DNA of 64,000 nucleotides, from NCBI GenBank assembly GCA_002269645.1, contig NIVC01000513.1:310001-374000 (forward strand). The letters are read 5' to 3'. The DNA is from Macrostomum lignano. Taxonomy: Eukaryota. The notes below the pieces were generated by a model. It did no database searches, was not told the DNA's origin, and saw nothing but the letters and a program-made list of their open reading frames with translations. Of this stretch, positions 53,627 to 59,440 are shown piece after piece. The position numbers and the translations under genes were made by a program. Every line of letters starts with the position of its first letter. Position 1 is the first letter of the stretch.

Positions 53627-56600
53627 CTATTGCCGTTCTCTGACGTGAAATCTGCATACCTGCAGCCGTCGCAGCAGCCGTCTAAAAGACAGACGCAGCC
53701 TCCGTAGCCAGCTCAGCTGATACATTTTATTTGCCGCCAGAGATTCCAACCCAGTCGAATGACCATCATGCATCTGCAGTCGTCGTCGACTACTCACTTC
53801 TCTTGCCGTGTCGGACAGAGCTGACATTGCGCGGAAGTCCAGTTCAACATAATCCAACTGCGCGGACGAGTTACCACAATGAAACACGGTTGAACTGACG
53901 CGAGCACCGCCTGGGATGATGATGGGACTAATTGGGTCAGGGGATTCGTACTGCAAGCTGGCATACTGCACAGCTGGAGGGGGACAGGCGGTCGGCCTGA
54001 ACTGTTGTTCGTGCAATTCATTATTGTGCGATTGAAGCCGGCTGCTCAGTGGCGAACCAAGATAAGCGTAATTGAGTCTGGGATCCAGCATTTCGTCCGC
54101 CATCAGCTGAGACTGCAGGTTGGCGTACGGCCGCTCCGGTGTTGCCTGCAGGGGCAGCCGAGTCTCAGCCTGCAGATTGATGTACCTGCGGTGCATCTGC
54201 GCCCTACCGATAGTGCAGGGCTGTCCAACTCTCTCCAGCTCACCTGCGATGGAGAAATTTTAGTTGCACTTTTATTGTCGTAAAAAATGTGTACAGTACT
54301 GTACGTCGTCTTTAAGCAACAAGTTTGTTTCACGTAGAAAATGATAGGCAAAAAGCAGAATAAAATCAAGAAACCATGCTATTCCTCTATTGCTACTGGT
54401 GTGAAAAGTCTCTAAAATCAATCAAGGACGCGTATTTGGGAAGGCGCCGTCATCTCATTTGAGGACATCAACAATAGGGAGCGCCAAAACCGTTCTCATA
54501 CATGTATATCGACAGGTTTTGACACCTTTGACCTGTTTTGGGAAATCAATAATTTTGCTTCAACGCGACAAAAATGGTGCCTGCGGCGCTAAATGAGTGC
54601 CTGCGGCGCTAAAATGAGTGCCTGTGGCGCTAAAATGAGTGCCTGCGGTGCTAAAATGAGTGCCTGTGGCGCTAAAATGAGTGCCTGCGGCGCTAAAATG
54701 AGTGCCTATGGCGCTAAAATGAATGCCTGTGGCGCTAAAATGAGTGCTTGTGGCGCTAAAACGAATGCCTGAAAAAAAAACAAAAATTCAGGTTTTCATG
54801 CTTATATTTCAAAGCAGACTGTCTGCAAGCTGGGGGCTGCCAGCTTTGCTTGGCAATTCGTACGTGATCAATGCAGAAGCGAAAAAAATGTCTGAAAATA
54901 AGAGCAACGAAATTTCGAAAACAATCTTCACTTTTTTGAAAATGTCTGATTCGCAAATTTCATGTTGACTCCCAAGATTGCTTTTCTGAGAGAGCGAGAG
55001 AGATACGGAGAAAAATGAACTAATGTGTATCTTGAGTTGCTTGTAAACGAAATAGAAGCAGAAAAGACTAAACAAAAAGTACAAGCAGGAGCTCGGTTCA
55101 TGAGAAACTTTCTAAACTTTGTACTTTTTCAAATTGGCTTAAAAAGCTTAGTTTTGACCTTTCCTACGAGCATCGTTTAAGCGTTAATACGAGCGTATTT
55201 GTTTAAATTAGACGAATAAATAGCTATTTTTAAATTGATGAGGATTCTCGAAAAAAAATTGCCAGTACGCAATAAAACAATGGGACAATGTTTTCTACTA
55301 AAATCATTTCTGCTCGCGTAAATTTTTGTTTAACTGTCGATTGATAAGACAAGGAATGCGAGGGAATGGTTGCTAAAAAACAAATGATATGCAAAGGGAA
55401 TCTCTCTGGGAGAAAGCTTCCGCGTGCAGTCAAAATTCATGTGAAATGGCGCCCCCTCAAACAAAATGGCGCCCCCTCTAAAGGAATGGCGCCCCTTCAG
55501 ATGAAATCGCTCGGGAAGAAAGCTTTTTCATGCAGTCAATTAAACTTATTTCCCTTCAAATAAAATGGCGTCTTACTTAAATGCAATGGCGCCCCTCAGA
55601 TGAAAGGGCGCCCCCTCTAAATGAAGTGGCGCCCCTTAAATGAAGTGGCGCCCCAAAAATGAAATGGCGCTCCTCAGGTGAAATGGCGCCCCTTCAGGTG
55701 AAATGGCGCCCCCTCAGATGAAATGGCGCTTCCTCAAATGAAATGGCGCCCCTTCAGGTGAAATGGCACCCCCTGAGATGAAATGGCGCTTCCTCAAATG
55801 AAATGGCGCCCCTTCAGGTGAAATGGCGCCCCTTCAGGTGAAATGGCGCCCCCTCAGGTGAAATGGCGCCCCCCAAATGAAATGGCGCCTTCTCAAATGA
55901 AATGGCGCCCAAATACAAATTCAAATCCAAAGGAATCCTCTAAAGATGCGACAGTCAGTGCCCCTAGAAAGATTTTGTATTATAAGCAAGATATTTAAAG
56001 TGAGATGAACATCTACTATTTATAATTGACGTTGGCTACTCAAATTTTTGTTTCAGCCGATATGATTTGCACAAATGAAGGACACATGGACTCACTTACC
56101 AGTTCCAAAGCTTCCGGAAGCACTTTTTATTGCTGTCATTGGTAACTGCACGAATGCTCACACGAATTTAAAATACCTTGATGAAGACACGATATAGCAA
56201 CTGCCTCAATGGGCCAAGACGATTTTGTTTTAAATGAAATAAAAAACACCAACTCGCATCGTTGCGTATTAATTGGACGAGGCTTTCTACACCAATGAAA
56301 CTTTGTTCAAGCAACCTTGAGAGACTGCAAAATTCTCCTGTAATAATGATCGCTACAGCCTCCGGCGCCCAGTGCAGCCGATAGAGCGAGGATTTAAAAT
56401 ATAATTAAATTACACTGCAAAAGCAAATCTACGAGGGTATGATTCAGCAAAAGATATCGACTCCTTACTGGCTTATTTAGCACTTGAACTGCACTGTCAC
56501 AGTCACGCATGCTGCTCAGGCATTGACGGATCGGGCTGCCTATAAAATGCATTAATTTTAACTAATTTCGATAGCTGATCCTCTCTACCAAGGTTCATTT

Positions 56601-59440
56601 ATCTATCTATCTATCTATCTATCTATCTATCTATCTATCTATCTATCTATTTATTTATCTATCTATCTATCTATCTATCTATCTATCTATCTATCTATCT
56701 ATCTATCTATCATCTATCTATCTATCTATCTATCTATCTATCTATCCATCTATCTATCTATCTATCTATCTATCTATCTATCTATCTATCTATCTATCTA
56801 TCTATTTATCTATCTATCTATCTATCTATCTATCTATCTATCTATCTATCTATCCATCTATCTATCCATCCATCTATCTATCTATCTATCTAATTTGTAT
56901 GCAGATTGTGTACGCGAGCCTTTCTATTGAAATGTATACCTGCACTTGTACAGTTTCAAGAAAAAAGCCACTCAAAGCAGAGCTCCTACTTAGTCATAAA
57001 TCTTTGACACTGAATGAATTCGAAGCAGAGCCGTTAGGTAAAGTAGTTCTGGGAGTCAAGCCCGACGCACAAGCGTGGACAGGAAGTCTGGGCCGTGGCA
57101 GTTATCCTGGCTGTCTGATAGGTGATTTATGAGCCCATGCAGCAGCACATTCGTGGCCACAGCATTTGACATCCGCAGCCTTTGGTTGACTTGCCCTTAT
57201 GTCAGAAACTCGCAGAAGTCCCATGTCGTGTCCTGGAGTTTCATGTCACACCTAACAAGCCTCAAAATCGCTGAAGTCTGCTCAAGAATCATCTGGATTT
57301 GATCAAATAGATATTGTAACTCATCATTATCAGGCCCTTTCGAGAGTGAACTTATCCCTTAATTGTTGAGTAAAGAATATTGGTAAAGAAGAATTTCAAC
57401 GCAGTTTAAAATTCAATGCATTTTGCAGTTCTGCTACTTTCAGTAAAAATATCAGAACATCACATGTATAAAGTGAATTGAAACACTTATTTGACACATT
57501 AGGGAAGTAACAGATATACTGGTTTTTAATTTAGACACGACACAACACGATTTAAGAGAGTCTCATGTCATATTTCTTTTAAGTAACTCTGATCTGTTTT
57601 GCCTCTTTTAATCTAAAAAGATTATCTAAAGGTTACAGAAAACTTTGAAAACAAAAAATATTATCTTTAATGCTTTTACTGCTTTTAATGCCTGTAACAG
57701 GAAAATTACATTTTGGCTAAATTGTTGAGGTAATACTCGCTACTTACAGTAGGTGAACTAGTTCAATAACAGTAATAAAATCTACAGTATTTTTCAAGCA
57801 AACCGACTTGAAAAAGTGAAAAGTCACGCATTTTACTTTAAAAGTGAAACAGAAAAACGGCACATCGATGTAATCTTGCGTAATTTGGATATCCGGGTTG
57901 CTTAGAGGTCATTTGGGTTGCTTATGGTGGACATCCGGGTTGCTTACTGTGGATATCTGGGACTTGCTTAATTTGTACATCCAAGTTGCTTTATTTGGAC
58001 ATCCGGGTTGCTTAATTTAGACATCCGGGTTGCTTAATTTGGACATCCGGGTTGCTTAATTTAGACACCCGGGTTGCTTAATTTGGACATCCGGGTTGCT
58101 TAATTTAGACACCGGGTTGCTTAATTTGGACATCCGGGTTGCTTAATTTAGACACCCGGGTTGCTTAATTTGGACACCTGGGTTGCTTAATTTGGACACC
58201 CGGGTTGCTTAATTTGGACACCCGGGTTGCTTAATTTGGACATCCGGGTTGCTTAATTTGGACACCCGGGTTGCTTCATTTAGACACCCGTGTTGCTTAA
58301 AACTGCAATCCGGGTTGCTTAATTTGGACACCCGGGTTGCTTCATTTAGACACCCGGGTTGCTTAATTTGGACATCCGGGTTGCTTAATTTGGACATCCA
58401 GGTTGCACCTTAAACTAGGTGACACAACTGGACTAAAATCGTGTTAATTAGAAGTACGAGTACTTCGATACGCATCCTTCGCATGTACATAAGACTTAAT
58501 TGCCGTTAATTTTCTACAGCAAAGTCTCCCAGCATCGACTGTCGGCACCGCCAGGAATCTCCCTGACCCGGTCCTGCCAAGAGTCCAGCCTCAGCAGCGC
58601 AGGCGAATCGGACTTCAACAACTGGCACTTGGACTCTTCAATGCTGACAAAATTCAATTTTGCTGACGAGAAATGCTGGCCTTGAAAATGGTCCAAATTC
58701 TTCTCATAGTCTTTGTCGTTCTGCTCGTCGTCGCAGTCGGCCTCGGCGACGCCGTCTGCGTAGTCGAACGTACGACGTCGCCAGGAGCTTTTCGACGCGC
58801 AGGCGAGGCAGACGGCGGCAAGGCAGAGGGCCAGCAGCAGCAGGCAGAAGGCGGCGAAGGAGGCCGAGACTGCGTCCATTCAGGGCGGATTGGGGAAATG
58901 GAAGGGGATATGTCGAGCATTTAACGCTGAATTGTATGCCCTAAAACTACACAAGCTCAGTAATTCCCCAACCTTGAAATTGACCTCGCTTAAAGAAGTT
59001 CCAATTCCAATTTTAAATTCCCTTTGAAACTTTATGTCTATGAAATTCTTTATGCTTGAAACTTCCCGATCCTTGAAATTCCCCATGCTTAAAATATCCT
59101 ATTCCTGAAATTCCCCAACCCTTGAAATTTTTCTATCCTTGTAATTCCCCCATCCTAGAAATTCCCCATCTTTAAAATTCCCACATTCTTGAAATTCCCC
59201 TAATCCTTGAAATTTCCTATCAATTACAACTCCCTATTTTAACCAATTCTTATCGGTAATAATCCCAACCGCACAAGAACTCCCATCGTCAGCAAGTTCA
59301 CCTGAGACCGATGTCACCAATCCGTCACTGCTGCTCTGCTGCTGAGCGAGCCTCGCAGCTGCCCTGACGATGACGCCAGCGCTGTGCTGCGAATTCGACT
59401 CAAAAAACTCCAGCTGAGAAGTCGAGCTGTTTAGCCTCAT
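53627..59440 (-). CDS. Putative transmembrane adaptor protein (single TM, juxtamembrane CxxC, multi-tyrosine cytoplasmic tail)
   Basis: Phase-consistent model: [59440-59302], 58869 (or ATG 58879)-58568, 56145-56100, 54243-53798/53627. TM FAAFCLLLLALCLAAVCLAC followed by SKSSWRRR. The tail contains YINL, YANL, LNYAYL, VQYASL and LDYVELDF. Confidence 0.62.
54588..54770. repeat. 21-bp minisatellite (ggcgctaaaatgagtgcctgt), inverted copy of the 42735-43265 unit
   Basis: Same unit on the opposite strand. Confidence 0.9.
55440..55910. repeat. ~20-bp minisatellite (aaatggcgccccttcaggtg)
   Basis: Tandem copies. Confidence 0.9.
56598..56892. repeat. (ATCT)n microsatellite
   Basis: Read directly from the sequence. 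Confidence 0.96.
57890..58400. repeat. 22-bp minisatellite (aatttggacatccgggttgctt)
   Basis: Tandem copies. Confidence 0.93.

Follow-up and report, generated by a model that had tools for sequence, protein, structure and literature searches.

Does the flatworm Macrostomum lignano possess a transmembrane adaptor laid out like those of vertebrate immune cells, and do the pieces of sequence that suggest it belong to one gene at all? The question is raised by four minus-strand pieces of open sequence lying between positions 59440 and 53627 of a 64,000-nt stretch of genomic DNA (NIVC01000513.1:310001-374000, assembly GCA_002269645.1), the whole of which is referred to here as the window. A first reading made from the letters of this DNA (the sequence-only reading) had joined the four pieces into a single transmembrane (TM) protein with a tail of tyrosine motifs. 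Judged by codon usage, open frames and substitution patterns, the exon that carries the TM helix is very probably coding and the exon that carries the tail is probably coding. Tentatively, we favour a single unannotated, lineage-restricted coding gene whose adaptor-like product would act as a phosphotyrosine scaffold. It is plausible as an orphan gene, and only its motifs suggest that it might function in the manner of LAT or SIT.

The predicted protein and its motifs

The four pieces (59440-59302, 58869-58568, 56145-56100 and 54243-53627) do join in phase, giving 1104 nt and a protein of 367 amino acids with its stop codon at 53627. Exon 1 (59302-59440) begins with an ATG in good context (ACAGGATGA), encodes 46 amino acids and ends in the phase 1 donor CAG/gtgaac. 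Exon 2 (58568-58869) encodes a hydrophobic segment (residues 48-72, 58867-58793), the CLAC motif (residues 67-70, 58810-58799), the basic cluster WRRR (residues 76-79, 58783-58772), an acidic stretch that includes two tyrosines, and the sequence DSPALL (58609-58592), and is followed by the donor CGG/gtcagg. Exon 3 (56100-56145) comprises only 46 nt, LPMTAIKSASGSFGT, with a weak acceptor, an in-frame ATG and a strong donor, CTG/gtaagt. Exon 4 (53627-54243) follows a good acceptor, tttctccatcgcag/G, and encodes a tail of 204 residues with five tyrosine motifs: RYINL (residues 182-186, 54187-54173), PYANL (201-205, 54130-54116), LNYAYL (219-224, 54076-54059), VQYASL (254-259, 53971-53954) and LDYVEL (292-297, 53857-53840).

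The features attributed to this protein in the sequence-only reading, including an N-S-S sequon at Asn4, were all found, and their residue positions could be confirmed. Residues 1-46 contain no hydrophobic stretch resembling a signal peptide, and a Kyte-Doolittle scan finds only one hydrophobic 19-mer region in the whole model. The N-terminal segment is short, as had been claimed, although its length depends on the 5' model, being 46 residues with exon 1 and 4 residues should translation begin instead at the ATG at 58879. The tail likewise appears to be free of domains, having no match in Pfam or among PDB sequences and being disordered in AlphaFold2. Run without an alignment, AlphaFold2 gives one confident helix at residues 49-83 (pLDDT ∼85), then a low-confidence tail, then a basic amphipathic C-terminal helix at residues 327-366 (53749-53630).

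The tyrosine motifs are enriched beyond what shuffling of the composition yields. YxxL is found at five of the ten tail tyrosines (P 0.002). Three sites (LNYAYL, VQYASL and LDYVEL) fit the consensus of the immunoreceptor tyrosine-based inhibitory motif (ITIM), their location in the cytoplasm being assumed (shuffle P ∼0.01), and two (RYINL and PYANL) contain YxN and are candidate Grb2-type motifs (P ∼0.04). Three copies of Y-x-[N/S]-L-Q, a pattern picked post hoc, are present (P<5e-5). These three occurrences are encoded by different codons and no DNA-level repeat lies behind the tail motifs, whether within exon 4 or as a further copy in ∼130 kb; the recurrence is therefore one of protein sequence, and an origin of the motifs from a repeat or transposon was rejected.

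Coding character of the exons

The M. lignano assembly holds three homeologous subgenomes, with single-nucleotide polymorphisms at ∼2.2% genome-wide and 1.1% in coding sequence (PMC10733133). Looking up the protein of the neighbouring eIF1/SUI1 gene (44918-48142, minus strand; Mlig023505.g1), which is 100% identical to M. lignano BOX15_Mlig023505g1, leads to three loci in GCA_002269645.1. One of these, L002, agrees with the window at 100% identity across 15,143 nt and is thus the same locus, which bears out the flatworm origin supposed in the sequence-only reading; the others, L001 (NIVC01000471.1) and L003 (NIVC01000157.1), are the two remaining subgenome copies. The candidate gene is present once per subgenome, at NIVC01000513.1:363,627-369,440 (minus strand), NIVC01000471.1:115,674-123,164 (plus strand) and NIVC01000157.1:154,688-162,432 (plus strand). 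At the 1-3% divergence that separates them, the copies are informative on reading frame and coding status, but too weak a comparison to judge single tyrosines or to tell exon from intron.

As a yardstick for codon usage we took the bona fide exons of the window, those of the Groucho gene and of a gene with a universal stress protein (USP) domain, in which the GC content of third codon positions (GC3) is 0.74-0.83. The TM exon is coding-like by this measure (GC3 0.77, codon log-odds +0.42), and exon 1 is so more weakly (GC3 0.70, log-odds +0.16, the highest of the six frames). Exon 4 forms an island of GC content 0.55 between flanks of 0.33-0.42, the borders of which match those of a 210-codon open frame; a frame of this length has P ∼0.003 given the composition.

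The model as a whole is open in all three copies, where it encodes 367, 365 and 365 amino acids, the sole indel being one of 6 nt that keeps the frame. In exon 2 the ratio of nonsynonymous to synonymous differences (pN/pS) among the copies is 0.29 in the claimed frame, compared with 0.7 and 1.67 for the others, and in exon 4 it is 0.41 against 1.18-2.25 out of frame. The last 57 codons, which encode the basic C-terminus, show four synonymous changes and a single conservative one, Leu to Ile. Local non-coding DNA is variable at 2.9% of sites, compared with 1.6% for exons 1 and 2 together and 1.2% for the part of exon 4 that holds the tyrosine motifs (p=0.06); exon 1 is 99.3-100% identical to its paralogues. 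Exon 3 is free of substitutions among the paralogues, but the 600 nt around it vary just as little. A patch within exon 4 (53899-53800) is hypervariable (7.4%), with 7 variable sites in 94 nt as well as the in-frame 6-nt indel (ARVSSTVFHCGNSS compared with ARNSPTVFGSLS), and every difference there is specific to the window copy.

All tyrosines, all leucines at position +3, CLAC and WRRR are retained in L001, L002 and L003. Only two changes touch a motif: VQYASL becomes VQYDSL in L001, still fitting the ITIM consensus, and PYANLQ becomes PYANLP in L003. As a check on tyrosine conservation, which the sequence-only reading had proposed for related flatworms, this comparison of copies that are 97-99% identical has almost no power.

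The 5' end and an upstream gene

Exon 1 is preceded, ∼70 nt upstream of its ATG, by a TATA-like box, GCATAAATAC (59513-59504), that is present in all three copies and may serve as a promoter. With a box of its own and an ATG in good context, exon 1 is our preferred 5' end, and a large ectodomain is unlikely. The exon-like pieces further upstream were considered as an alternative, since the discovery of exons for a large ectodomain would have made the protein a receptor. Two of them (63767-63650 and 62533-62450), the first encoding a signal peptide, join the TM exon in phase, but fit better into a separate gene that has its own stop codon and AATAAA; together with the third exon of that gene they are the only such pieces found upstream.

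That separate gene is apparently unannotated and consists of three minus-strand exons (63767-63650, 62533-62450 and 61300-61155), with all junctions in phase 1 and bounded by GT..AG. The gene has a TATA-like box, and its ATG stands in a strong context; the first exon encodes a textbook signal peptide and has the donor GACG/gtgagt, and the third ends in a stop codon, with AATAAA ∼120 nt further on. The product, of 115 amino acids, is of secreted type and has no Pfam match. It contains two G-K-R sites (AYDE-GKR and FEPLR-GKR), which are the signature of an amidated neuropeptide or prohormone precursor.

Intron 1 of the candidate gene contains a minisatellite (59041-59221) of ∼10 units, each 17 nt long and GGGGAATTTCAAGGAT-like, situated 170-350 nt before the TM exon. 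Each unit holds an NF-kB/Rel-like core, GGGAATTTC, which may well be due to chance in a genome so rich in minisatellites.

One gene or two

Whether the TM exon and the tail exon share a transcript is the point on which the interpretation turns. The cis-donor motif of M. lignano is GT[G/A]AG, present in ∼65% of donor regions (PMC8629364). The intron between exons 3 and 4 (56100/54243) has consensus signals at both ends, whereas the exon 1 donor, gtgaac, departs from the motif. Other in-phase joins of exon 2 to exon 4 also exist, using a donor at 58549 or acceptors a few codons into exon 4. A further one is offered by the other subgenome copies: in L001 (at ∼1150) and L003 (at ∼1035), AAG replaces ACG after WRRR and creates a consensus donor, CGTC/GTAAGT, directly after TM-WRR and in phase with the exon 4 acceptor, where the window copy (58774) reads GTACGT. 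This donor could yield a compact isoform with the TM helix, WRRR and the tyrosine tail. Since several such joins are available, agreement of phase proves little; the in-phase joins on which the four-piece model was founded do exist, but they are no more than chance would provide. Splicing of exon 2 to exon 4 within one mRNA is a prediction.

A number of observations weigh against the single adaptor gene. No GT[G/A]AG donor is found anywhere in exons 1 or 2, and the exon 2 donor, CGG/gtcagg, is non-consensus with a rare C at +3. Exon 3 is intron-like, with GC3 of 0.20, codon log-odds of -0.88 and a weak acceptor. The codon usage of exon 4 is marginal (GC3 0.59; log-odds -0.05 overall, +0.17 in the first half and negative in the second), its overall divergence of 2.8% is close to the non-coding value, its motif region has three nonsynonymous changes against one synonymous among the three copies, and retention of motifs between paralogues as similar as these says little. 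An exhaustive phmmer search of 1.84 billion representative proteins gave no homologue, its one match being a filamin-repeat artefact; a word-indexed search gave no match, nor did Pfam, the PDB sequences or Rfam. Finally, in none of the three copies does GenBank annotate a gene over the 10 kb upstream of eIF1. The last point is weak evidence, because the local introns are packed with minisatellites and the M. lignano gene annotation discarded transcripts that overlap repeats (PMC5730564). An exact database look-up of the two long open reading frames (ORFs) found neither of them recorded.

The locus might instead hold two small genes, a possibility that accounts for the evidence about equally well and that we consider only slightly less probable. 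The first would comprise exon 1 and exon 2 read through the donor (58517-58567, VREIPGGADSRCWETLL, ending in TAG), giving a single-pass protein of 164 amino acids that has an acidic tail and a sorting motif (DxxxLL) and may be a highly divergent member of the EVA1/FAM176 family; the second would comprise exons 3 and 4 and encode a soluble tyrosine-motif protein of 218 amino acids, whose basic amphipathic C-terminal helix might allow it to bind membranes. The lack of a consensus donor in exon 2 fits this arrangement, as do the stop codon that its frame reaches 17 codons beyond the proposed donor (ORF 58514-58879), the well-formed intron between exons 3 and 4, and the unequal GC3 of exons 2 and 4. 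The second gene would have either its own promoter or spliced-leader (SL) trans-splicing near exon 3. A TATA-like TATTTTAAAT (56175-56166) stands ∼25-30 nt upstream of CAGTTACCAATG, and exon 3, which starts CAGTTACC, has an in-frame ATG, albeit in poor context and ∼8 nt from the putative start site. The M. lignano SL ends in ATG and 30-39% of genes are trans-spliced (PMC8629364, PMC5730564); this ATG is in frame with exon 3 only, and trans-splicing at the acceptors of exons 2 or 4 was rejected because it would be out of frame with their long ORFs. Exon 3 could equally, then, be the first or a trans-spliced exon of a separate transcript. For the first gene, no AATAAA or ATTAAA follows within 500 nt of 58517, although this is a weak criterion, given that eIF1 also has none within 500 nt.

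The best Pfam match of the 164-residue product is FAM176 (PF14851), at 13.2-14.0 bits (E 0.044-0.077), far under the gathering threshold of 31.5 bits; human EVA1A and EVA1B, by contrast, score 198 and 193 bits and are valid members of the family. An equally strong match to Tetraspanin lies over the same TM segment, hhalign against EVA1A and EVA1B gives a probability of 3.6% and aligns the TM helix only, and BLASTP recovers just the TM-RRR segment. A weak collinear alignment with EVA1A does run past the exon 2 donor (W-x5-E-[IV]-P-G; tail-only shuffle P 0.02), and DSPALL would be in keeping with a small membrane protein of endosomes or lysosomes as well as with the weak likeness to EVA1/FAM176. 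Family membership of the TM exon product is nevertheless unsupported by hhalign and by the Pfam threshold, and we treat it as a weak lead. What the two-gene arrangement leaves unexplained is adjacency: a domain-free ORF with five YxxL sites has a TM-CxxC-basic exon 4 kb upstream of it on its own strand, and for two unrelated genes this would be an odd coincidence. The splice signals appear to favour two genes by a modest factor, while we consider that this functional coherence favours one.

Two other explanations concern what the tail is rather than where it belongs, and both seem to us improbable. YxxØ and acidic dileucine sequences are sorting signals, and all five YxxL sites fit YxxØ while DSPALL fits [DE]xxxL[LI]; the architecture could thus be real and the protein an endosomal or lysosomal one whose YxxØ motifs bind the mu subunits of adaptor protein (AP) complexes and act in concert with DSPALL. 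Five YxxL motifs strung along 115 residues, in a tail that is long and disordered, would be unusual for sorting signals, however; two of the sites have Asn at +2 and three have a hydrophobic residue at -2, features specific to SH2 ligands. Alternatively, the tail ORF may be non-functional, a chance or decaying frame in a GC island whose motifs reflect composition and a Leu-Gln/CTGCAG artefact, with the TM exon alone, if anything, being coding. Its codon score near zero and negative in the second half, its divergence at the non-coding level, the hypervariable patch and the want of annotation or homologue all suit such an origin, as do two further unexplained 211-codon ORFs in the window (35363-35998 and 40148-40783). 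CTGCAG occurs five times in the 617 nt of exon 4 where ∼0.35 would be expected (36 in 64 kb), but all five are codon-aligned as Leu-Gln, a dipeptide found seven times in the tail. The improbability of the open frame, its survival in all of the copies although these differ at 17 sites and by an indel, the synonymous excess in the claimed frame only, and the coincidence of GC island and ORF boundaries beside a good acceptor also argue for a functional frame. Of the transmembrane-adaptor interpretation from which this study set out, the architecture, the motif enrichment and the coding behaviour of the TM and tyrosine exons have held up, whereas a transcript shared by TM helix and tail is conjectural and no homologue was found.

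Proposed topology and function

If the single adaptor gene is accepted, a mode of action can be proposed, in which topology, acylation, phosphorylation and the Grb2 and SHP2 partners are all predicted from sequence. The 46-residue N-terminus, having no signal peptide, would be translocated to the outside, with residues 48-72 acting as a reverse signal anchor. The tail of ∼295 residues would be cytoplasmic, because strong positive charge (Lys73 and Arg77-79) lies on the C-terminal side of the helix, in accordance with the positive-inside rule. Two cysteines of the helix, Cys67 and Cys70, lie at its cytosolic end and may be S-acylated.

A Src-type kinase may then phosphorylate the YxxL sites of the disordered tail; flatworms do have both Src and Syk kinases (PMC2820527). 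The phosphorylated sites would bring SH2-domain proteins to the membrane: Grb2/Drk could bind pTyr183-Ile-Asn and pTyr202-Ala-Asn, and the tandem-SH2 phosphatase SHP2/Csw could bind pairs among pTyr221, pTyr256 and pTyr294, which are 35-38 residues apart. The protein would in this way work like SIT, LAT or PAG while being unrelated to them by descent. In its most specific form, a convergent, palmitoylated, ectodomain-less adaptor of raft type whose YxN and ITIM sites couple Src and Syk to Grb2/Drk and SHP2/Csw, the proposal seems to us improbable.

Genomic surroundings

Two of the neighbouring genes are on the plus strand. The Groucho/TLE gene (15590-26149) has kilobase-sized introns filled by minisatellites, and the intron of the USP-domain gene (28715-33012) is a 3.5-kb array that produces long artefactual ORFs. 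A remnant resembling a piggyBac transposase lies at 35774-36241 on the minus strand. Between 48228 and 52627, ∼4.4 kb are specific to the window copy, L001 and L003 having ∼0.95 kb in that place. This segment includes an interstitial telomere-like (CCCTAA)n tract (52150-52337), with inverted arrays of 65-nt units on either side (51868-52150 and 52432-52615), and may derive from a mobile element or from the healing of a break.

Comparison with known systems

The layout of the candidate matches the definition of the transmembrane adaptor protein (TRAP) class (PMC4861716), of which Cbp is a described example (PMC3492796). Adaptors that consist of an anchor and short linear motifs, with no domains, escape annotation based on homology. 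If the single adaptor gene is confirmed, it would show that the signalling design of this class arises convergently; to our knowledge the class has been described only from vertebrates, in immune cells, and the candidate would be the first such adaptor outside them. It would also provide an entry to membrane SH2 signalling, and to receptor-proximal phosphotyrosine signalling generally, in a genetically tractable flatworm in which transgenesis and RNA interference are available; no membrane docking partner is known for the Src and Syk kinases that flatworms possess (PMC2820527). Should there be two genes instead, they are ordinary orphan genes that the GenBank annotation has overlooked.

Among the proteins with which parts of the candidate can be compared, EVA1/FAM176 (TMEM166) resembles the 164-residue read-through product in size and in layout, with a short N-terminus, a TM helix, Cys and RRR, and an acidic stretch, but its conserved NVFTSAEELERAQRLEERERI motif is not recognisable there. 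Draper/CED-1 is, like the candidate, an invertebrate single-pass protein with a YxxL tail, which is established to recruit SH2-domain kinases and adaptors; it differs in its large ectodomain of EGF repeats and its NPxY motif, neither of which the candidate has. The YxxL-x15-YxxL spacing of the candidate exceeds that of the canonical immunoreceptor tyrosine-based activation motif.

LAT, PAG/Cbp, NTAL/LAB and LIME share with the candidate a short ectodomain without signal peptide, a single TM helix, a CxxC motif and basic residues at its cytosolic end, and a long tail that lacks domains but bears several tyrosine motifs, YxN among them. They differ in their motif types, which are those of Grb2, PLCγ and Csk, whereas three of the five sites in the candidate are of ITIM type and its ectodomain would have 46 residues in the preferred model. 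No sequence similarity to them can be detected in the flatworm protein. As far as sequence can tell, membership of the TRAP class by descent is excluded, and since homology to the vertebrate adaptors is absent, the candidate can at most be a convergent analogue.

The ITIM receptors, such as PECAM-1, SIRPα, PZR and the Siglecs with their LxYASL, have large Ig-type ectodomains and signal peptides, for which no exons are found within 4.5 kb upstream of the candidate. The three ITIM sites of the candidate, however, fit the same consensus, (S/I/V/L)xYxx(I/V/L), and a spacing of 35-38 residues is compatible with the tandem SH2 domains of SHP2. SIT and TRIM form disulfide-linked dimers through an extracellular cysteine; the candidate has no such cysteine and no homology to them. 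It nevertheless shares with SIT, TRIM and LAX the form of a short single-pass adaptor in which ITIM-like and YASx sites occur beside a YxN (Grb2) site, and SIT carries YGNL, an ITIM and YASV, a parallel to be taken as a lead and not as a test. In its mixture of motifs the candidate thus appears closest to SIT and to the Siglec-type ITIMs.

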